The position numbers and the translations under genes were made by a program. Below, one piece after another: positions 15,616-34,231 of a DNA stretch of 64,000 nt (its first letter is position 1; each line of letters begins with the position of its first letter). This stretch comes from Phaeosaccion multiseriatum. Lineage: Eukaryota > Protista > Ochrophyta, other classes. The notes beneath the pieces are model-generated. The model made no database searches. It was given only the letters and a program-made list of their open reading frames with translations, and had not been told where the DNA came from. The stretch spans positions 3,472,001 through 3,536,000 of the forward strand of contig OZ218953.1 in the NCBI GenBank assembly GCA_965112735.1, written 5' to 3'.

Positions 15616-18454
15616 AGCGCACGAGCCCTCGTCAGTCAGAGGCACGAGGCAAGACATCTCAAAGCGTCGCTTGCTTTCGCTTCTTACGATGCACTTACCA
15701 GGGGCAATGGTGATCGAACCGGAGCACACAGTTATTACAGTGCCGGCAGTGCTGTGCGACGAAAGCATAGGAGAGGGAGAGCATCGATCAATCGCCGGTG
15801 GAGCAGCTCAAGAGGGACAGGGAGGTAGAGGGAAGGGGGGATCTTGAGCACTCGCACTCCTACCTACACTCACCTTGGCTCGGGGCGGCCTCAGAATGTG
15901 GCACGTGCTGCAATAGTTGAGCTTGTCCTTCACGTCGGGAGGCATGCTCTGGAGGAAGAAGAAGAGGGGAGGGCGGAGAGGCAGGCAGAGGAGGGACGAG
16001 CGCCGGGGGGCGTGAGGGTTTCCGCGCTCGCGCATCCACCTCTCAACTCTCAATTCTCAACTCTCTCTCTCTCTGACACACACACAAGCACACACAGACT
16101 CACCTCCACCAGTCTGTTAAAGGGCCTCCTCGGAATGATGCCCGGGTCTTTGGCCGAGCTCAGAAAGAGCGTGACGAACGTCCCGACAATGAGCACAGCG
16201 GGCACGGCGGCGTAGGGCCACTCCGCGATGTCGGGGTACACAATCAAGAAGAAGAGACCCCATGTTGTCGTCATCATGAAGATGGATAGGAACTGAACTC
16301 GGCCATGAAATAGAGAGAGAGAGGGAGAGGAGCCAGAGAGTTGAGAGAGGCAGAGCAGAGTGAGAGGGAGAGGGAGAAACGAGAGAGAGACAACAACAGA
16401 GAGAAAGGCAGCGTGAGATAAAAGAGAGAGAGCAACGAGACAGACACAAGACAGGAAGCGAAGCCATGGCAGACAGGAAGGGAAGGGAGAAGACGCACAG
16501 CTGCGTCAATCACGGCCACAGCAAGCAGCCCCCCCCCCCCCCCTCACCCTCATCTCCAGCCCCATCCTTCCTCACCAGCTGCCTCCAGTGCACACCGAGC
16601 ATGAGGCGCCCGCCGCAGAAGAACCTGTTGTTGCCCTTCCAACGTGTAAACCTACGCTTGTCCACACCGACATTCTCGGCCATGCTGTTCGCCCCCCCCA
16701 CCGACCCTCCGCCGGCCCCCGCCTGGTTGTTTACCCCACCGCCGTTGCCCTCCTCCAGCGCTACCCACCCCTTCCTGCTCCTGGACGACACCGAAGAGCT
16801 CCTGTATCCCCCACCGCCATCCGTGTGGCTGCTCCTGCTCCGGCTGCGAGCTCTCCTCTCAGATTTTTCTTCTGAGCGGCCTTGGCGGCCTTGCAGGTCG
16901 CTGAAGCTGCCCCCTGGGGACGATTGCCTGTGTCCGCTGCCATCCCCCCTGCTGTGCCTGCGCACCCTCCTGGTGTGCATTACCTCGCTCTCTATAGAAG
17001 GGCTCCTGCTCCTCGAGGCCCTGGAACTTCGCCGGGACGATCTCCTTCCCTTGCCCCCCCTGCTCTTATCCCTCACCGAGCTTCCCTCCGGGGAGGCCGG
17101 CTCACTATCCGTCTGACCCTGACCCTGGCCTTGATCATGACCCTGACCCTGACCCTGACCCTGACCCTGACCGTGATTCCCGTTACTAGACGAACGCCTT
17201 GAGTTCGTTAACTTCTTCTGCAGACTATTCGTCGAGCTCGAGAGTCTCCTCTGTAGCTCGCGGATCGATGCGGGAACGTTGCTCCCGCTGGAATGCGTCC
17301 CCGCTGCCTTGGGCGGCACCACAGGAACCATCTCCACCACGCCGACTCCGTGGCTGCTGCCGTACCCCGACACCAGAGATTCACCCTCCGACTCGCCCCC
17401 CCCCCCAGCGTGGGACACGGACTGGGACCCTCCGTCCGTGGTGAGAATGCCCAACGCGGATAGGCTGTCGTCAAACATGTCATGTTGCTGTTGGTCCTGA
17501 TACATGTCCATGTGCACGCTCAAGTCCTCGTCCTCGTCCTCGTCATCGTCCTCGTCCTCGTCCTCCTCCTCCTTGTCGTCCCCACCCCCCCTCCCCTCGT
17601 GCGGATTGAAGTGAGTGCTCGCGCTCCCCCTACTCCCCGCCCGGGAGCTCTTGCTGCCGTACCGCACGGCCTCGCCATAGGGCATTTCCGCATACTCCAC
17701 CTGCCCAGAGTGGAATGGATATAATGCAGTGCGTCGGTCATGTGTCGTGCCGCAGGAGGGGGGGAAGTGAGGCGTCCCTCCCCGCGCACCTCAAGGCGCA
17801 CACACACTCACTAGTCTCCTTCCACTCACTCACCTGGTCGTCTTCGGCCCTCTGCCGCTGCAAGGCCTCCTCCAGCTCTCTGATGCGAGCTTTTGCGCTC
17901 CTCCTTCTGCCTCCCTCCCCCCCTGCCGCTTCTGCTGCCGACTCTCCCTGCCACCCCCCTTCCTCCTCATCGTCAGACATTCTCTGGTAGCTGCTCTGCT
18001 TGCCGCCCGTACTCGCCCTCTCTGCTCCCCCTGAGGTCTTGGTTCCTCCCGTCGCCGCTCCTGCCCCTGCTGCATCTCCACCCTTGGCGGGAGAGAAAAT
18101 ATTTCTGTTCGACCCTTTCCTCTTGAGCAAGGCGCTCACTCCAAACTTACTCTTCTTCTTCTTCCCAGCTGGGGGTACCCCGAAGTCGCCTGATTCACCC
18201 CTCTCACCCCTCTCGGTAGGTGCGCCTCGGTCGCTTGCCCCAAAATCCGGCGCCGCGGAGAAATTGGATTCCTGCCCGACGCTTATGATGGACTCGTCCC
18301 CGTCGTACCCGCCATCGACGATCGGGTCGGAGCTCCGACCAGCGCCTTTCCGCCTCCCCCCGCCCTCAGCCATCCCGCCCCTTTGCTCCACTACTGCTTC
18401 CCTTCTTTGGGAGACCAGGCCTCCTCCTTCCTCGGGAGGTGTTGAGACCTGCAT
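14434..18454 (-). CDS. DHHC palmitoyltransferase (ERF2/ZDHHC9-14-18-like) with long disordered N-terminus, ~8 exons; start uncertain
   Basis: [65 protein letters not shown] and [14 protein letters not shown]. Confidence 0.93.
15220..15411. repeat. Intronic minisatellite (~29-30 bp units built from CCCATATGCC/TCTGCCCACCTG)
   Basis: Visible tandem copies starting at the minus-strand donor GCAG|GTGGGC of the DHHC gene. Confidence 0.9.
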
Positions 18455-22000: not shown

Positions 22001-25000
22001 AGAGAGGGGCGAAGAAGGATGGGGGTGGGGCTGCGGCGGACGGCGGCGATGGCGGAGGAGGAGGAGGAGGAGGAGGAGGAGGAGGAGGAGGAGGAGGAGG
22101 AGGAGGAGGAGGAGGAGGAGGAGGAGGAAGCGGAGGGCGAGCAAAGGCCCTGAAAAAGGGCAAGGGCAAGGGCAGGGGCAAAGGCAAGGCGGGCGGCGGT
22201 GGTGGTGGCGGTGGCGGCGGTGGCGGCGGTGGGGGTGCGGGCAGCGACACGAGCAGCGATGGAGCAAAGGCCTTGATGGCCAACGGGGACAAAGTCGGTG
22301 AAGGCGAAGGCCAAGGCATGGTTCAGGTGCATTCGCTGTATCCCGGCGGGGACGTGCTGAAGGCCTCTGAGCACCTCTCCAACGCCATCGCCGCGCTGAA
22401 GCTGGCCATGCTCCGCCAGGAAGCCGCCGCCGCTACCCTACAGAGGAGGAGGGCGAACAGGGAAGCACCAGGCCAAAGGGACGGTGAGAGAGGGGGAGGA
22501 GGGCCGGGGCGGCGGACACCGGGGGGGGAGGAGGTGACTGTGATTCTGCATGAGAGCACGCCGGTGGCGGTGATGCGACCAGCGGGGGGCACTCTCGAGG
22601 GGCGCGAGGAGGACGGGCAGGAGGAGGCCGAGGAGGAGGAGGGGGGGGAGGAGGAAGGGCGGAGAGAGGAAGATGCGGATGCCGCCGTGGCTCTGTTCAT
22701 GCTGTCACGCCAGCTGCTGGAGCTGCAAGTGAAGCTTGTGCACGTGGGCCTGGCGGGCCTGGGATCGGGGCATGCCGCGGTGACGGCAGAGGGAGAGGCA
22801 CTGCTGCAGGAGCCCCCGCCCTCTCCTTCCCCCTCAGGACCCTCTCAATTGGGCCCCCAGCCCCAAGCAGCCCCAGCGCCCGCGGTGGCGCTCGGAGACG
22901 CCATCAAAGAGGCGGCGGGCGGCTTGCAGGAGGTGGTGCGGCAGGTAAGGACAGGAACGATAGAGAGGCAGAGAGGGAGAAAGAGAGAGAGAGGGAGTTA
23001 AGAGAGGGAGGGCGAGAGAGAGAGGGAGGGAGGGAGAGAAAGAGAGAAGGAGAGGGAGATGAGAGAGTGAGAGAGAGGGAGGGAGGGAGAGAGACAGAGA
23101 GGGAGAGAGAGATGGAGCGGCAGATAGGGGCAGGGACTGTAGGCGGCGAGGCGGGCTGTGTGTGTGCCCTGCGCTGGGGGCCGCAGAGGTTGGGTCACCA
23201 TTGACATCGTCCCTCACCCTGCCCCTCGTCCTTTGCTCTCTCTTTCAGCTGAGTGAAGCAGACATGATGTTGGAGAGGCATGCCGCTATCGTGCGGCAGC
23301 TTCAGGAAGCAAAGCAGGCCCTGGCCGGCGCCTTCAACCCCGACTTAGATGGGAGAGTATCCCCTTCCCCTTCCCCGCCCCCTGCTCCTACTGCTCCTGC
23401 TGCGGGAGGAGGTGGCCACAGCGGCGCACGAACCAATTCTGGGGGCGGGGGCGGGGGCGAGGATGAGGACGCCAACGAGGGCGGGGAGGAGCTGCGTCAT
23501 TCCCGCCGCGAGCTGCACAGGCAGTGGGCCGACGCCCTCGCGCTGAGCGGCGACTTGTGTCGCGCTGCGGCTCTGCTACCCCCCTCTCTGCAGTACGGGG
23601 GCGCAGAGGACGGGGGAGTGTGTGATTTTGGGCCGGGCGGCAAGGCGAGCAGCGGCGAGGCAGGCAGTGCCGAGGCTGGCAAGGCAAGCAGTAGCAAGGC
23701 AGGGGCAGGCAGCGGTGGTAATGGCAGCAGCGGTGGCGAGGGAGGTGGCCGGAGGGGCAGCGGAAGGAGTCGGAGCAACCGAAACACTCCGGTGTGGGAC
23801 TCGCTGGCTCCTCTGCTGCGGTCTCTCACGCCCCCCCTGGCGCCGGAGAGCATGGACGTTTGCGAGGCGGTACACGGGAGGGTGCTGCAAGCGTTACTTT
23901 TGCACGGGGGGACAAGCAGTTGTAGTAGCAGTAGTAGCAGCAGCAGCAGCGAGCCCGAGAGGGGGGAGCAGCCGCCAAGTGAGGCCGAGAGGGGGTGCGA
24001 CGGACATGCCGAGGTCGATTGCCCGTGCCTCTGCAGTGAATGGAGGAGTAGTAGCAGCAGTAGCAGCAGCAGTAGTACTATTAGTAATAGCGCTGCCGCT
24101 TGTCAGGCCGGTGCGGATGCATGGCAAGCAGACTTGGCGGCCTACGCGAGCTACAAACACGCCCGGGGGCGGCTTCGGCAAGAGAGAGACGCACTGCGGG
24201 AAGAGGGGGTGGAGCCAGGGGGGGGGGGGGGCACGGCAGCAGCAACTCACGGTGGTGGTGAGGCAGCAAAGAGCGATGGTGGCATTGGCGGCGACTGGGG
24301 CACGGGCGGTATGCATGGGGTCTCTGCAGCAGAGGAGGGAATAGACATGTTGGAGCTGGAGCTTACCCGCAAGATAGCAGACGCGGCCAACGAAGTGGGT
24401 AAGCGCCTGGCAGCGAGAACCCGCGCTCTGCACCGGAGTAGTGCGCCCCACGGGGAGGGGAAGGAGGCCACAGGGGAGCGGAAGAAGGCCTTGCTCTGCG
24501 CGGCGAGCCTGGCTGCGGGGCTGCACTGGTTCGAGAGCAGTCTGAAGGAGTGGGAGAGCGTGGCCGACGCGCCCAACACGGCCCTTTTGCTGTGTAACTT
24601 GTCTAACATGTGCAAGCTTAGGCCAGGGGTGTGGCAGGCAGCCATGCAGCAGCAGCAGCAGCAGCAGCAACAGCAGGAGGACGACAGGGAAGAGGATGAG
24701 AAGGAGAATAAGAAGAAGCCGCAGCAGAAAGAGGACAGGGAGGAGAAGAAGCAACAGCAGGAGGAGGAGGAGGAGGAGGAGGAGGAGGAGGAGGAGGCGA
24801 GGGGAGTGGAGAGGGAGGGCTTGACGACAAGGCCCAAGAGTGGACAAGATGCTTTGCTGCGGGAACTGACCGTGTCAGCATTCGAACACGCCGTGGCCTT
24901 GTGCGAGAGGGCGCACGACAAAGTGTTGTTCCAGAGGGAGCTGCACCCCGCGGCGTGGGACGGGGTCAGCGCTGAGCTAGCCATGACCTACCTCGCACAT

Positions 25001-25780
25001 GGTGTGTGGAGTAGACAGAGGGAGAAGGAGCTGGGTGAGGGAGGGGGAGGGGGGGGGAGAGAAGGAGGAGGAGGAGGAGGAGGAGGAGGAGGCGGAGGAG
25101 CAGCAGAGCTGCTCGAAAAGGCCCTCCGGATCTACTCCACCCTGGGCAACAGTCGCCAGGCCGCCGCGACGCACTACCAACTGGGCCTGCTGCATTCCGA
25201 CAGAGCGCGCCGCTCCTGCTCCCTGCGGCTGCTGCCCAAGGTGCGACTGAGTGCCAAGAGCGCTGTGCTGCATCTGGAGGCGGCGGAGGCCTTCTTCGGC
25301 AAGTACGAGCGGGGCTCTACGGCGGTGTTGGTGGGCCTCGCGCAGGCGGATGTGTTCCTGGACTCGGCGGAGGCGCTTGGCGGGGGCGGGGTGGTGGAGG
25401 AGGCAGCCGTCAAGAGCCTGCTTAGGGCCCTCAGCGCAGTGGTGCTATCCCCCGGCCCGGCCTCCACCCCAGCCCCCATGTCGACTGCAGAAACCACCAC
25501 CGCCAGCAGCAACAGCAGCAGTGTGAGCGTGAGTGAGGGCACCCTTCGCCTGCTCGATCGCCTGCGGGGAAGGCTCATGGATGCACTCAAAGCGGCCCTC
25601 AGGGCGGGCAAGCAGAGCGAGCAGAGCGAACAGAGCGTGAAGGGAGGGGGGGGCGGTAGCAGCAGCGCGCCGCTGGGGCGACTCAAGGCTGCGTACAGAG
25701 AGTGCCTGGCGTGTCCTGACACCCCCTCGCTGCCCGCCCTGCAGCATCTAGAGGTGCGCCTCAGAGCCAGCCTTGAATAG
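19044..25780 (+). CDS. EDRF1: Erythroid differentiation-related factor 1 (EDRF1)-like protein, ~5 exons, with many low-complexity insertions
   Basis: FKTLFK|VPY..VVVGFHRVGRTLVVD, LDYYLENVMENIPELALC..GYIQGCRVVRTEDIP and FDPAVVDLNATMLMRFLQENCSREG|TYLLHR match EDRF1 conserved blocks. TPR-like C-terminus (ALLLCNL, AAATHYQLGLL). The first exon is inferred. Confidence 0.85.
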
Positions 25781-26120: not shown

Positions 26121-29100
26121 TCAGTGGCGAGCGGGGGCGGCGATGCTAGTCATCCAGTCCAGCCCCCCGCCGGCTCCAACATCCCCCCGCTCGACATCGG
26201 CGCTGCCTGCTGGAGCGGCTGCCATTTTGATCCAATCGGGCGCCGCATTGGGGTCATCGTGGACCGACATCCGCCGGACATCCTCCTTGAGCGGGGGCAG
26301 CGCAGCGGGAGCGGCCTCCTCCTTCTTCCCTTTCTTCTTCTTCTTCTTGTCCTTCTTGCTCTTCTTGTCCGCGCTATTAGCCCCGATGGGAGACGTTAGT
26401 CTGTCTCGGACGCGGCTGGTGAAGGAGGGGACTGCATCGGTGCTACTCGGGCCCGTTAGAAGGGCCTTGTCGCCTCCTTCCTTGCCCGCCGCTGCCTTGC
26501 CCCCTATGAGGCGCGGTCGCACGAGGCGAATCTTCGGCAAGTAGTCCGCTAGAGCAGCGCTGCCCCCCTCCGCGGGCGCCTTTCCTCCCGTGAGGTCTGG
26601 CTTTCCGTAGGTGGCGCCTCCGATGCCAACGCCCGTGAGCTGCTCTGGCTGAACCTTGCCACTCGTCCCTTCCTTGCCTCCCTTGAAGCAGCACCTGTAG
26701 GCCAGCGCGAGTACTCCCAGACCCCCCACCACCATGCAAATCTGCACCCACAGCTTGTCGCGCCACCATGTACTGTCCGACTGGGGCAGCTCCATCAGCT
26801 CGATGGCAGGGTCGTAGAAGATGGTGCCGTTGCTGCTCGGTAGGCGCACCACGAAGGCAGACGAGCCTGCCCCTTCCTCCGCCCCACTGGCAGTCGCGTC
26901 CGGCTCCACGAGAGACACCTCCGCCGCTGCCCAGCCTCCCTCCGAGGTGTGGGCCCACTCCGACATTACCACCGTCACGCCGAGCGCACTAGAGGCCATG
27001 TCGAAGGACTGCCCACTGCTAAGGCCACTGCTGTCTGGACTGCTGGCTGTACTGGCTGTGCTGGCGGCGCTGTCTACCGTGGCGGTAAGAGCGGAGGCCC
27101 CCTCCGGCCCGCTGACGAGAGCAGTGACCTCGAGGAAGCCCCCGTCCATTCCGCAGGCCGCAAAGTCGCAGAAGGGCCACCCCTCGACCGTGAGGCCCAG
27201 CTTGAGTGTACCTTCCCCCACGGCGAGGGCCTCCCCTCCCTGACCCTCCCCCTCCGGCCCGTTGCTCACGCTGCCCGCTTCTTGGAAGACGTACATGTCT
27301 AGCACGACCTTTGCCGTTCCTCCGGGCAGCACGGCGGAGGCTGTGAAGTTGCAGTTGACCGCCGCCACCCCTCCCAAGCGCACCGCGTCAGTATCTCCCT
27401 TGGTGAAGTTTAAGGTGGTGAGGTCGATGGTGTGTGCGTCGGCTACGGAGGTGGGTAGCGCTGCCCCCTCCGTGTCGAGCTCTCTCAGGAGGGACACGCT
27501 GAAGGCTACCCCGCCGAGGGACGCGTCTTCGGTGGCGAGGCTGATGACGCCTCCCTCCTCCTCGTAGCTCACCTCGCGGCTGCTGTAGTCGTACACTTTC
27601 ACTAGGAGGGAGGGACGGAGGGACGGAGGGACGGACGGAAGGAGGACCGACGGACCGACGGACCGACGAACAAGAACGCAGCAAGGCAGCGAGGCAACGG
27701 GGAGGAGCAGCGAGGGGGGGGAAGGGTGCTTTGTGTCAGAGCCGATAAAGAGGAGCGGTCCAGGACCGTGGAGCGGAGGAGCGCAGGGCGGGCTTCGTCT
27801 CTTTCTCTCTCTCTTCTCTCTCCCTCTTTGCCCTCCCGCTCTTCTCCCTCTCTCTCCCTACTGCTCTCTCTCTCTTTCCCTCCTTCTCCCTCTCTCGCGT
27901 GCTCCCCGTTCCCCTGCCCAGCCCGGCTGCACGCACTCACCCGCGGACGTGGAAGCTCCTGAGCTTGGATCCTCCTCGTCGTTCTCGTCGTCGTCATTAT
28001 CCCAGAAGTCAGTGGTGGGGAGCGGGCCGGGCGTCGGGGCCGGCGAGCCCCACTCCAAGCCGAGGGAGCCGGAGATGAGGTAGGCAGAGGCGCCGTCTCC
28101 GGACACCCCCGCGCTGTCGTCGAACGATCCCACCACCAAATCTGCATGCATTCAACAGGAAGGAAGGCGCGGAGTGAATCAATTGAGTCGAGGAGGGGAG
28201 ATGGATAGTTGAGCCAGTTTGGGGGGTGCACAGCAGCTGGGGGCAAGTGACGGTGCGGGTGCGGTCAGATGAAAAGAGAGGAAGAGAGTGAGGGAGGGAG
28301 GGAAGGAGGCGGACTTTGCCTGGCCAGAGTATGCCTATGTCGACTTGGTCACCACCCCTCTCCCCCAACCACTTAGGGAAGTGCCTCACCGTCAAAGCCG
28401 TCCCCATCCACGTCCCCCGCCCCGTGAACGCTGTAACCGAAAAAGTGATCTTGCCCCTCCCCGTACAGGGCAAAGCCGTCCGTCCCGTCGAGGTCCTCCG
28501 TCGCCACCTGGGCAGGCAGGCCACACGGAGAGGGGGGGAGAGGTGCAGAGAGGAGCAGAGATGCAGACGAGCAGAGGAGGAGAGGGGAGGAGAGGAGGAA
28601 AGGGGGTGAGGAGAGGAGAGGAGGAGAGGGGAGGAGAGGATCACTCGCGCACGAGAGCGAGGAGAGGGAACATCGCCGGGCAGGCGACATGCCACACGCC
28701 AACACCACACGCCAACGCCGCTCTGATACGCCCGCACACTCCGACGCGGTCCCACGCACGCACGCACGCACATACCTTGGCTATGTTGTCCCTGGTGCCG
28801 AGAACGACGTACACGGCTCCCGTGGCGGTGGCGGTGTGATTTCCGCCCTCCTGCTCGGCCTGCACGGCGCCGATGACGACATCCGCCAGCCCGTCTCCAT
28901 TCACGTCCCCCGCGGGCCCCACGCTCCACCCCGCGTAGTCGGAGGCGTCCGCTCCGGTCACGAGCAGTCCGTTGCGACCGTTGAGGGCCTCTAGAGACAT
29001 GTCTGCCTCTGTGGAATCCGCGTCGTCGCCAAAGATAATGTAGGCCTCCCCCGCGGCCCCATTGGAGTGGCTGCTGGACGCTGGCGTGGCGAGGTGCGCG

Positions 29101-30823
29101 GCCACGACAAAGTCTGCGAGGCCGTCTCCGTTGAAGTCGCCGAGATCGCTCACGGAGAATCCCAGCATGTCGTTGACCTGTGGAGTGGAGGGGAGTGATG
29201 GAGCGCCGTGGGGAGGGGGGTCAGCTCTTGCGTGAGGGTGTGCCGCGTGTGTGGGAAGACGGGTCAAGCGGGAGCAGGGGAGGGTGGGGCGTATGTGCTG
29301 TCTGCGCAGGAGGCAATAGGAGAAGGCGAGGCGTCGCGCTCGCTAATTGCTCCACCCAGCCGCACGCACACACGCGTACCTCCTTTCCGTGAAGGGCGAA
29401 GCCGCGCGTCCCGTCCATGAGGTTGCTAACTTTGAAGGCCCTGCTCCACGAGGAGGCTCCGTACAGCACGTACGCCCGGCCGGAGTCGTCATTGGCGTGA
29501 GGGGCACCGATGATGATGTCGTCGAGGCTGGGCAGTGGGCAGAAGAGGGATGGATGGAAGCCATCAGCAGGGCAGGCAAGATGGGGCGGGGGAGAAGGCA
29601 GGGGCTGAGAGGTGGGAGGCGTGGTGGGGTCTCTTACAGTGGCGCTGTGGCAGCAAGCCCCAGATAGACGATGGACAAGAAGGTCTCTCTCTCTCTCTCT
29701 GGTGCCGTCGGAGCCGTGTCGCCAGCCATGTGTCCGAGCAGAACCCCCCACCCTCCTTCAACCCTCCTGCTCTCTTTGCAAGCAACATCCTTCACTAACC
29801 CTCACTCCAGCAGCTTATGTATTGTGAAGGAAACTAAACAAGGACTCCCCCCTCTCTATGTGTGGCACTTGTTGCGTCCCGCTCACCCTCTGCTATGGCC
29901 GCACCGCACACACGGACTGCTTGCACTTACTCACGCACTCACCCGTCTCCGTTGATGTCACCCCCCGTGCTAACGCTCCACCCCATGTAGTCGTCCCTGG
30001 CCTCGCCTAGGACGAGGAAGCCGTTGTCCCCGTCCAAGGCCTGTGCAGACAGCCCCACTTCTCCTGCGCGGCTGCCGGTGGAGGCCCCGAAGACTACGTA
30101 CACCTCTCCCGCCCGACTGCGCCCGCCGGGGTCTGCCCCATAGGCCCCAATCACCACGTCCCCAAGCCCGTCTCCGTTCACGTCGCCCGCGCCTGCCACT
30201 GAGAAGCCTGCGCTGTCTCCGTTGTCGATGCCCTCCACAATGAGGCCCTGCGCCGCCGTGAGCTCTGTGAGGTTGAGCTGGGGGGCGAAGGAGGCCGCCC
30301 CGTAGACCACGTAGGCTTGTCCGATGCTATCACTGTGCGTTTCGGAGGCGCCAATGACAATGTCCGACAGCCCGTCTCCATTAAAGTCTCCGGCACAGCT
30401 CACAGAGGCGCCTGTGAGGTCTCCGTCATTAATGCCCACCACCCGGAAGCCGTTGCTCCCATCCAGCTCGCCCAACTCCATCGCACCCATCGTGTCGCTG
30501 CCGCCAAACACCACAAAAGCCTGCCCCTTGCTCGATCCTGCTGCCTGAGAAGCGCCCAACAGAATGTCGCTGAAGCCATCCCCGTTCACGTCGCAGGAAC
30601 CCCCCACGGACACACCCAAGCCGTCGGTACTGTGGATCGCAGTGAACGCGAAGGCCCCCACGTCCTCCGACAGAGTAGCGCTGGAGGGATAGTTAAACAA
30701 GCCCTCAGCCCCTCCAATGAACCAGGCACTGGGGGAATGTCCATCCTGTAAGAAAGAAGGCCAGTGAAGGCCCGAGAAAAGCAGCAGGAACGGGGCCAAG
30801 CGCGGCGTTGCTCCTGTGCGCAT
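26121..30823 (-). CDS. Type I membrane protein: FG-GAP (integrin-alpha-like beta-propeller) repeats, acidic linker, beta-rich domain, TM helix and cytoplasmic tail; ~6 exons
   Basis: Signal-like N-terminus. About 7 repeats of G.SV..AGD(V/F)NGDG..D..(I/V)GA. Linker DNDDDENDEED. TM segment LWVQICMVVGGLGVLALAY followed by RCCFK and a Lys-rich tail. Confidence 0.9.
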
Positions 30824-31494: not shown

Positions 31495-34231
31495 TCATGC
31501 TGGTACCCCTCCTGCTGCTTCTCCTGCTTCTCCTCCGACTGCTCCTGCTGCTGGCGCTGCTGCTTTTGGTGAGGTAGGCAGGTGCGCATCATCCGCCTCC
31601 TTCGTCTCCTCGCCCCCCTGCCCCCCCCCTGCCTCTAGCTGCTGTATCGCCAACTGCTCCTGGCTGGACAGGGGCATCCCGTCTCCTCCCAGCTTGTCCG
31701 AGAAGTTCGGCAAGCGTGACGGGGGGATGGCGCCGCAGAGGGCCGTGATCCAGTTGCGCAACCAGCCCTTGTCGTAGGGGTTAGGGTCGTCGATGTATAC
31801 ACCGCGCACCTGGGGGGGGGCAGCACGCACGCACACACGCACACACGCACACACGCACACACGGACATACGCAAGCCCCTCCTATCGTCAGATCTGCACG
31901 CTCGACTTGCCTCGGGAGGGTGTAAGGCGGGGAGGGAAGCTTTGGATCCAGCCCCTCTCTTCTCAGCTCTCTTCTGAGAGCAGGGTACCAAGGGCACTTG
32001 CCCAATCGGGTGTTGGGCATTCAGCACGGGGGCATGGGACCCAACTGCACTCACCCGCTCGTTGGTGGTCTGTCCCACCGCCAAGATGAAGGCGTGGTAC
32101 ACGAACAAGCTGTCAGGCCAGGCCAGGCCAAGGCGAGGAGATGCGATGGGGTAGGCATATGGGCAGAGGGCGGGCAGCAGACACACAACAACAGGCTTAG
32201 AAAAGGAGCGCAGCACCAAGCGGGGCCCAGACACAGCACACAGCACGTGCAAGGCACCAGAGGAGGCGCTGTGCGAGGTCAGCGTCCCTACCCGTCCCTC
32301 CTCGTGCCCAGTGCATATGTTAACTCTTACGTAATCATGGCCCATGTCATGAAGGCGGCTGCCAGACCCACGAGCAAGGCGATGGGCTGCTTTGCCACAG
32401 CCACGAGCACCGCAGCGCCCGAGTGGTGGTGTGTGCTTGGAACCTGCAGGGGGGGGCATGCACCAGTGGGAGAGGGGTGCGAGGCGGCGGGGGCGTCACG
32501 GGGTTGCAGGAAGGCAGCGGGTGGTGGGGACGTCCTCTGGAGCCGGCCACGTTCGACTGCCCTGCCCTCCCCTCCCCTCCCCTCCCCTCCCCTCCCCTCC
32601 CCTCCCGCGCACCTGGAGCATCCTCATCTGAGTGGTCCTTACGAGCAGCAGCAAGCACATGCCCGTCGCCAGGGCCGTGTAGAGCAACAACACCACCACG
32701 AAGGCCACGAAGTACCGGTAGTTGCGCGCACCCACGCACCTGCAGAGAGGGGGGGAAAGGGGGAGAGGAGGGGAGGGGCAGGGAGGCGCAGGGGCAGTGT
32801 ACACGCGGGATGGGATTACGCGCACAGCAACGCGACACGAGGGATGACATTCGCAAACGCAGCCAACAGCCGAGCTCAAGTCGAGTACTACAGGGGAAGC
32901 AAGTCGACGCGGAGGGAGGGGGGTTTGTGGCGGAGCTCCATGTATGGGGACGGAAGGGGGTAGAGCAGAGAAAAACGGCACCACCGAACCGAAGAGCCAC
33001 AATCAACAAGTACAAGCACACGCAAGAGGAACTTCGTTGTAGCGCCTTACGTGCCGACCCTGAGGAGGAGGAGGGGGGGGGAGGGGCAGGAAGGAGGGAG
33101 AGCGGGGGAGAGGACGGAGAGGGGCACGGGGTAAGGGGCACACGGCAAGGCAAGACAAGGCAAGGCAAGGCAAGAAATAGACGCCACACTCGAGAACATG
33201 TACCGCCTTCCCCTTCTCGGGCACTGCGCTGACCGGAATTGCCCACAGCCGCCCAATCAATCAACCACGGCTGTCTGACTGCTGACTGGACTGCTCACTG
33301 GCTGCTGACCGACGGCCCACTGACTGCTGACCGACTGACTAACTGCTGCGTTTCCACGGCGTACCATGGGCAGTGGTGGTCGAAGACCTCTACGCAGTTG
33401 TTGCACGAGTGGCAGTGCTTGGACCGTGGGGGGCGGAACAGGTTGCACGTCGGGCCTGGGGAAGAGAGAGAAGGGAGGAGGGTGGAGAGGAGGGAGGAAG
33501 GGGCAGGGACAAGGCAGCAGGGCGTAGACAAAGGGGGGGGGGGGAGGGGGCGAGGAGCGCCAGCGTGAGACGCACCACTCACTCCCGTGCACGCGTAGGG
33601 CATCCGTTCTTTGCTCGCAAGAGGAAAAGAGCGAAGGCTGGGGATGGTCTTTGGGTATACGGGTAAAGGCGTGAGACAGTCATACTCACAGTACTTGTAG
33701 CCGTGTAGTCCCAGGGGCAAACCCGGAGGAGGCTCGGCCTGTACAGCGAGCGCCAGCGGACAAAGGTCGAGAGGAGAGAGCGTGAGGAGGGCGTAGGGGG
33801 GGTCCAGGGTCAGGTGGGGGCGGGGAGAAGGGAGAAGGGGCGAGGGGCGAGGAGCACTGTGACGAGCACACCAATCCCACTGCCTTGCTGACGGACTGAC
33901 CGTCTTTCTGCCTGATTGACCGCCCAACTGACTGACTGACTGACTGCTTGCCTTACTGACTGACTGACCCACTGACCTTCGTGTGGGCGGGGTTGGGCGG
34001 AATGATGCCCGGGTCTGAGAGAGCGCACCGCCACAGCAGCACCATCGCCATACAGCCCAGCACCAGCAGTGCCAAAGTGAAGAGAGTGCGTTCTGACCCC
34101 GTCGGAAGCCGCAGCCCCACCGCAGGCACGAGCAAGAGCAGGCTCCCTGAGACCGGGGGCCGAGGGAGGGCCGAGAGGGAGCGGCGATAGGGAGAGAGAG
34201 AGGAGGCAGACAAGGTAGACAAGGCAGACAT

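Follow-up and report, generated by a model that had tools for sequence, protein, structure and literature searches.

An integrin-alpha-type FG-GAP propeller and a SAARP-type domain with a GLMP-like predicted fold in a putative membrane receptor of the alga Phaeosaccion multiseriatum

The window analysed here is a stretch of 64,000 nucleotides from the ochrophyte alga Phaeosaccion multiseriatum (GenBank assembly GCA_965112735.1, contig OZ218953.1, positions 3,472,001 to 3,536,000 of the forward strand); all coordinates given below count from its first letter. On the minus strand of this window lies a gene of six exons, 30823..26121, with about 1076 codons, an exon total of 3231 nt and consistent phases. 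The encoded parts follow one another in the order signal-peptide-like start, seven FG-GAP blades, acidic stretch of 11 residues, domain of about 270 amino acids, transmembrane helix with a juxtamembrane Cys-Cys pair, and tail of about 190 amino acids; every element listed in the initial annotation of this DNA was found where it had been placed. The gene and its parts are as follows (P0002 and P0003 are homologues introduced below).

29943..30823, minus strand: exon 1, with the ATG, the signal-peptide-like N-terminus, FG-GAP blades 1-3 and the first half of blade 4 (open reading frame, Pfam matches, three calcium loops)
29380..29527, minus strand: exon 2, second half of blade 4 (AG acceptor and GT donor in frame; tblastn support from P0002 and P0003)
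28776..29177, minus strand: exon 3, FG-GAP blades 5 and 6 (Pfam E = 1.8e-13; two calcium loops; tblastn support)
28390..28507, minus strand: exon 4, first half of blade 7 (GT-AG borders; loop DVDGDGFD, completed by exon 5; Pfam FG-GAP match weak when taken alone, E = 0.23)
27941..28141, minus strand: exon 5, end of blade 7 and a linker with DNDDDENDEED (no family match)
26121..27601, minus strand: exon 6, domain, transmembrane helix, tail and TGA stop
26790..27601, minus strand: first part of exon 6, SAARP-type domain with a predicted GLMP-like beta-supersandwich fold (37 HMMER relatives, hhalign, AlphaFold model, GLMP match)
26685..26747, minus strand: transmembrane helix, a 21-residue hydrophobic stretch in the translation, with Cys-Cys at 26688-26693
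26124..26684, minus strand: putative cytoplasmic tail (tail alignment A4; tblastn with the P0002 and P0003 tails matches 26321-26124)

All five introns have GT..AG borders, and the stop codon is the TGA at 26123-26121. Two FG-GAP repeats that are otherwise cut are restored by splicing, one at the junction of exons 1 and 2 (DINGDG/LDDIIIGA, the slash marking the junction) and one at that of exons 4 and 5 (DVDGDGFD/DLVVGS). At the N-terminus, hydrophobic LAPFLLLFSGL follows MRTGATPR and reads like a signal peptide; this segment and the transmembrane helix were assigned by eye from the translation, without a predictor. Searches and folds were run exon by exon, never with the six exons as a joined sequence.

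The same arrangement recurs in other organisms. A protein of Chrysoparadoxa australica (P0002) has the same order of parts, and an environmental eukaryote known from a metagenome (P0003) has signal peptide, FG-GAP repeats, Cys-rich linker, domain, transmembrane helix and tail in one uninterrupted open reading frame of 1278 codons, found on two contigs, so that the fusion is seen there without any recourse to splicing. On a further metagenome contig (L003) FG-GAP exons are followed, on the same strand, by two domain exons, a transmembrane helix and a tail with the shared motifs, and a fragment (P0026) comes from the brown alga Discosporangium. In a maximum-likelihood tree the three FG-GAP-linked domains group as one clade (96/96), apart from the animal sequences; since the tree is rooted arbitrarily, we read no direction of transfer from it. 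Splice logic, together with the unspliced homologue, suggests that exons 1-6 are one gene, presumably read as a single transcript, for one membrane-anchored protein. The initial annotation had proposed just such a protein with an integrin-alpha-like propeller, and the gene model, the FG-GAP matches and the unspliced homologue bear it out. Nor had it recognised the architecture as one already described; we found no paper joining a SAARP-type domain to FG-GAP repeats, to algae or to GLMP, which is weak evidence because our coverage of the literature was incomplete.

The head of the protein is, by its sequence, a seven-bladed beta-propeller of the integrin-alpha FG-GAP type, with the calcium-loop consensus in all blades. 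Pfam FG-GAP matched exon 1 over four stretches (E = 6.5e-24) and, as listed above, exon 3, with weaker matches in exons 2 and 4; the closest solved relatives of exon 1 are the propellers of integrins alpha-V and alpha-IIb (E about 1e-10). About seven Ca-binding-type repeats had been noted initially, and there are indeed seven, each with a D-x-N/D-x-D-G-x-x-D loop, five lying within exons and two running across the exon 1/2 and 4/5 junctions. The propeller with its Ca2+ loops and the type I topology are common to this protein and to integrin alpha chains. The algal protein, however, has the loops in seven of seven blades, as do bacterial integrin-type propellers, whereas animal integrins have them only in the last three or four (PMC3192720). 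Below the head, the algal stalk is a predicted supersandwich (see below), unlike the Ig-like legs of integrins: exons 5-6 gave no Pfam match to the thigh, calf-1 or calf-2 legs (Integrin_alpha2) at E <= 1, and no integrin leg was among the 50 best of 48,161 chains in an exhaustive structural comparison of the stalk model. The stretch after the transmembrane helix is without a GFFKR-type motif, the tail starting with YRCCFKGGKEG.

Brown algae and other stramenopiles were already reported to have integrin-like or FG-GAP membrane proteins (Cock 2010, as relayed in PMC3192720), and the Phaeoexplorer preprint (Denoeud 2024, 10.1101/2024.02.19.579948) describes stramenopile FG-GAP proteins that do not have the integrin domain structure, leaving their relationship open. 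The algal protein belongs to this class of FG-GAP proteins without characteristic integrin domain structure, and the locus identifies a previously undetected extracellular domain in one such class, which brown-algal genomics had left unclassified.

That domain escapes most searches. Its sequence (first 284 residues of exon 6, 26748-27599, minus strand) matched nothing in Pfam, NCBIfam or the PDB sequences; a word-index protein search with the domain alone gave nothing, the same search with a 28-sequence profile gave only three unnamed matches, probably because low-complexity words filled the candidate list, and a language-model atlas search returned only weak archaeal rows at 0.82, under the level at which matches were counted. 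An exhaustive HMMER search of 1.84 billion representative proteins, on the other hand, produced 37 matches at E <= 1e-3, the best of them at 9e-15, and such a result is not to be had by chance. The matches form two groups, one made of many secreted proteins with one or two domains (from bivalves and a jellyfish), the other of the two long proteins with the same architecture, P0002 and P0003. A bacterial repeat protein with seven short matching stretches (P0009) was discarded as a compositional match.

The 28-sequence alignment A1 of the family displays, in this order, the motifs E-x-D..G; H-x-F-N-x-F-A; Y-x-F-x-E-x-G; G-T-x-K-F-N..I..W-x-F-C...C..G..G-x-F-L-D; F-D-L-G; and F-x-F-R-F-P..Y-D-P. 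W141 is invariant, and C144, C149 and Y262-D263-P264 are conserved in at least 90% of the sequences; the W-x-F-C...C pair and the terminal Y-D-P are present. Among the direct HMMER matches in the 1.84-billion-protein library are P0015 (E = 1.4e-5), P0033 (7.1e-4) and P0037 (9.2e-4). Their source names point in one direction: the P0015 cluster holds XP_011442506, skeletal aspartic acid-rich protein 2 of Crassostrea gigas, P0033 is SAARP2-like of Priapulus caudatus, P0037 is SAARP1 of Nematostella, and the oyster relatives are named SAARP1-like, SAARP2-like and acidic SOMP-like. Such names are automatic annotation, and an independent link was sought in the literature. It is found in S21 Fig of PMC4890752, where Cgi_011442506 (that is, XP_011442506) is aligned with Adi/Ami SAARP1-3, acidic SOMP, CARP4 and CARP5; the connection to coral proteins, though indirect, is strong, and runs via this oyster sequence and the published alignment. 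In addition, hhalign matched the profile of the algal branch to a profile of 23 animal domains with 99.9% probability (E = 8e-33, 231 columns).

The source names, the published alignment and the profile comparison lead us to accept a homology that the sequence evidence supports: the second domain belongs to one sequence family with the non-acidic core that is conserved in coral SAARP1-3, CARP4/5 and acidic SOMP, and in non-skeletal proteins related to them from cnidarians, bivalves and a priapulid. The initial annotation had pointed to such a resemblance from ordered motifs (LRELD.EG, NF.A, MYVFQEAG.V, GTLK..VEGWPFC..C..GFL, FVVRLP..IFYDP) and had called for a profile check against the SAARP family. 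The motifs lie in exon 6, on conserved columns of A1, and both the matches to SAARP-named proteins and the profile-profile match to the animal family uphold the resemblance.

The coral proteins and their homologues in Nematostella, Hydra, oyster and Pinctada (PMC3748352, PMC4890752, PMC6824150) share with the algal domain the family, the motif order and the W-x-F-C...C pair; in both, the core sits directly before a C-terminal hydrophobic anchor, and no Pfam model covers either. In Adi-SAARP1 (PMC4890752 supplement) the motifs follow one another as they do in the family alignment, and inserted runs of Asp stand behind the first strand and ahead of the F-D-L-G-like block. The algal domain differs in that it has no Asp-rich inserts, stands behind a seven-bladed FG-GAP propeller and is followed by a long cytoplasmic tail; also, the animal motif D-G..M..G-Y-P is replaced in the algal branch by a motif of its own, MSEW..GW. 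According to Takeuchi 2016 (PMC4890752), the sequence that SAARPs and CARPs conserve between their acidic regions occurs also in Nematostella, Hydra, Pinctada and Crassostrea, and may derive from a metazoan ancestor, its function being unknown. The algal domain, in contrast to this treatment, is found in stramenopiles, which shows that the SAARP-type core is not animal-specific. The core of the most abundant coral skeletal proteins, which has no assigned function and no Pfam model and was thought to be metazoan-derived, is hereby placed in stramenopile algae.

Two further observations concern the family. Environmental eukaryotic proteins (L005:1807-3342 and P0016) form a separate clade (100/99), with two tandem copies of the domain, Ala/Ser/Thr-rich sequence and no FG-GAP repeats, and one of them adjoins a gene for a PPR-repeat protein. 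The Stylophora skeletal protein P27, a partial acidic SOMP/SAARP3, is labelled 'Integrin alpha' or 'Spi_integrin_like' in tables of PMC4890752, a label that may trace to BLAST matches on FG-GAP fusions like the algal gene.

An AlphaFold (AF2) model of the algal domain, obtained with alignment A1, is all-beta, with a predicted local distance difference test score (pLDDT) of 85.7 and a predicted template-modelling score (pTM) of 0.84. Foldseek ranks the luminal domain of GLMP first for this model, and re-alignment gives Z 18.7 and a root-mean-square deviation of 3.0 Å over 225 residues for 6nyq_C, and Z 16.0 for 8r8q_B. Next come galactose-mutarotase-like supersandwich domains of glycoside hydrolases, phosphorylases and lyases, and YidC, at Z 12-13.6; the exhaustive comparison with the 48,161 chains produced the same order, with GLMP best. 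GLMP leads the general supersandwich matches by 3.9-5.1 Z units in the re-ranked lists and by 2.9 in the exhaustive search. Because a model of the Nematostella domain (pLDDT 89.8) also has GLMP first (Z 16.8), the resemblance is a property of the family and not of the algal protein alone. In the ESM Atlas, archaeal hypothetical proteins matched at template-modelling scores of 0.70-0.71 and the PF15065 GLMP cluster at 0.69 over 234 residues.

The stalk, according to these models, is a single beta-supersandwich, with a predicted fold closest to the GLMP luminal domain, and this predicted fold ties the SAARP-type core to GLMP; the description of the CARP4/SAARP1 core in a 2026 preprint goes no further than an Ig- or FN3-like beta-sandwich. 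GLMP (NCU-G1, PF15065; PDB 6NYQ and 8R8Q), whose luminal domain is a beta-supersandwich of galactose-mutarotase-like type, is the accessory subunit of MFSD1, a dipeptide transporter of the lysosome. In GLMP and in the algal protein alike the supersandwich directly precedes a single transmembrane helix. GLMP differs, however, in having no detectable sequence similarity, no propeller and only a short tail, and in being lysosomal. As a separate observation, rows 1-3 of the ESM Atlas search are hypothetical proteins of Bathyarchaeota and Thorarchaeota, which share the predicted fold at template-modelling scores of 0.63-0.71 and in this equal or surpass the GLMP cluster.

The transmembrane helix and the CC-containing tail of the initial annotation are both there, and its notion of a palmitoylation site is plausible, the juxtamembrane cysteine being conserved in all four homologues seen. 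The tail has a Lys-rich patch at about 26325-26370 and the motifs DDPNAAPDWIKMAA (26217-26258) and GGGLDWMTSIAA (26136-26171). In the alignment of three tails, A4 (algal gene, P0002 and P0003), the juxtamembrane Cys, P-D-W-x-K and G-G-x-D-W are invariant. The L003 sequence has a CCGCCCCHC cluster at the corresponding juxtamembrane place and then a tail with DPNAAPDWIK, GGLDWL, PSWM and GGLSWL. We know of no named motif that fits the conserved columns of the tail; the conserved DW(I/M/L) motifs are candidate docking sites.

Taking these parts together, we consider it probable that this ochrophyte, an alga related to the brown algae, has in this gene a type I receptor of the plasma membrane, with a seven-bladed propeller for a head, a SAARP-type, GLMP-like stalk, a transmembrane helix with a conserved Cys, and a tail with DW motifs. 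Its most likely function is that of a Ca2+-dependent receptor for adhesion or sensing. In this scheme the Ca2+-loaded propeller would bind an extracellular ligand, be it a polymer of the cell wall or matrix or another cell; the supersandwich would keep the head off the membrane and may, beyond that, bind a glycan or a partner in the membrane; the motifs of the tail would dock a cytosolic partner, and the juxtamembrane Cys might be S-acylated. The locus gives the SAARP-type core a receptor context, made of the propeller head, the membrane anchor and the conserved cytoplasmic motifs.

Several points weigh against this assignment. We infer ligand binding, surface localisation and Ca2+ binding of the protein from its sequence, and a supersandwich match by itself gives no function. 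The four public runs with the locus are DNA contigs of one sample, and the only joints seen in them are repeat artefacts at CT/GA-rich intron tracts. The resemblance to GLMP is structural only: PF15065 did not match the algal gene or 23 family members at E <= 1, and a profile search of PDB sequences gave nothing, the GLMP chains not being reached.

The same resemblance raises an alternative, which we regard as unlikely: that the supersandwich and transmembrane helix work as in GLMP, as an accessory subunit in partnership with a multi-pass membrane protein, which it would stabilise, while the propeller would be a sensor head added to it. In agreement with this, the algal and the cnidarian domain both find their best structural match in GLMP, and in GLMP as in the algal protein the domain ends about 10-15 residues ahead of a single transmembrane helix; in the GLMP-MFSD1 structure that helix of GLMP packs on the transporter (PMC11252000). 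A gene for an MFS/sugar transporter (L001:13811-15436) lies two genes downstream of the P0003 homologue, recalling the GLMP-MFSD1 pair. But there is no MFS transporter gene near the algal gene within the 64-kb window, the link to PF15065 is missing at the sequence level, and the C-terminus of many family members is a short hydrophobic tail, more like a glycosylphosphatidylinositol (GPI) signal than like a helix that binds a partner.

A role in mineral binding, which the initial annotation had put forward, appears very unlikely. The protein would then be a surface protein that binds mineral or free Ca2+ in the manner of coral SAARP/CARP4, and would nucleate CaCO3 or some other biomineral or adhere to it. 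It has the SAARP-type core; SAARP2 and SAARP3 are, like it, anchored by a transmembrane helix (PMC3748352, PMC4890752); its exon 6 ectodomain is net acidic (D+E 14.1%, K+R 3.5%), and the Asp/Glu linker DNDDDENDEED is present at 27969-28001 in exon 5 (D+E 21%, K+R 0%). The composition of the ectodomain is nevertheless far from that of an acid-rich protein. The acidic stretch lies outside and before the domain, and at its place the two full-length relatives, P0002 and P0003, have a linker rich in Cys. The Asp-rich inserts that define skeletal SAARPs and CARPs, and that are the putative mineral-binding parts, are confined to scleractinian skeletal clades, non-coral homologues being without them (PMC4890752, PMC6824150). 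Skeletal SAARPs and CARPs are recognised by two Asp-rich regions and about 20% Asp; the algal domain has no poly-Asp insert, and its loop at the position of SAARP acidic region 2 is Ser/Thr/Ala-rich, with low pLDDT. Because the coral-type inserts are absent, the mineral-binding role is unsupported; nor does anything show that the organism mineralises. Within the SAARP-type domain family the algal protein is one of the non-acidic members and not a skeletal acid-rich protein, and for the role of the core it suggests a stalk, or the binding of a glycan or a partner, in preference to the binding of mineral.

That the model has fused two genes, exons 1-5 coding for a secreted FG-GAP protein and exon 6 for a membrane protein of its own, is highly improbable: although the 339-bp intron that separates exons 5 and 6 is rich in simple repeats, and the public runs that cover the locus are DNA contigs without RNA, the frame is preserved from the exon 5 donor to the exon 6 acceptor, the translation of exon 6 has neither an ATG nor a signal peptide or leader ahead of the domain, P0003 holds both parts in one open reading frame, and P0002 and L003 keep the same order of parts.

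Returning to the receptor with its SAARP-type, GLMP-like stalk, a broader idea may be offered, which we hold to be possible but doubtful. The SAARP/CARP4 core, the GLMP luminal domain and the algal stalk might all belong to one ancient superfamily of juxtamembrane beta-supersandwiches that predates animals, the Bathyarchaeota and Thorarchaeota having proteins of similar shape. The ancestral job of the domain would have been on the membrane, next to a partner or to a polymer of the matrix. On this view the main skeletal acid-rich proteins of corals would have arisen when Asp runs were inserted into a cell-surface adhesion module that already existed, and ochrophytes would have used that module as the leg of an integrin-like receptor.

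As to the surroundings of the gene, the window contains no further copies of the domain. The minus strand has two DHHC-CRD motifs (C-x2-C..F-DHHC-PW), near 15715 and near 33381, about 10.4 kb past the 3' end of the gene and 2.6 kb past its 5' end. DHHC genes do flank the locus on both sides, as initially annotated, but nothing links them to it functionally; of the initial interpretation as a whole, the architecture and the SAARP homology are supported, and mineral binding and a functional DHHC link are not. A long open frame of 872 amino acids (23162-25780, plus strand), with runs of Gly, Ser, Gln and Glu, lies tail-to-tail with the gene, about 340 bp from its stop. Finally, the introns of the gene have simple tracts rich in CT/GA and CA (27602-27673, 27790-27830, 28565-28642, 28753-28771 and 29684-29700), at which public contigs break; word depth there is 4- to 9-fold higher, which marks the tracts as dispersed simple repeats.

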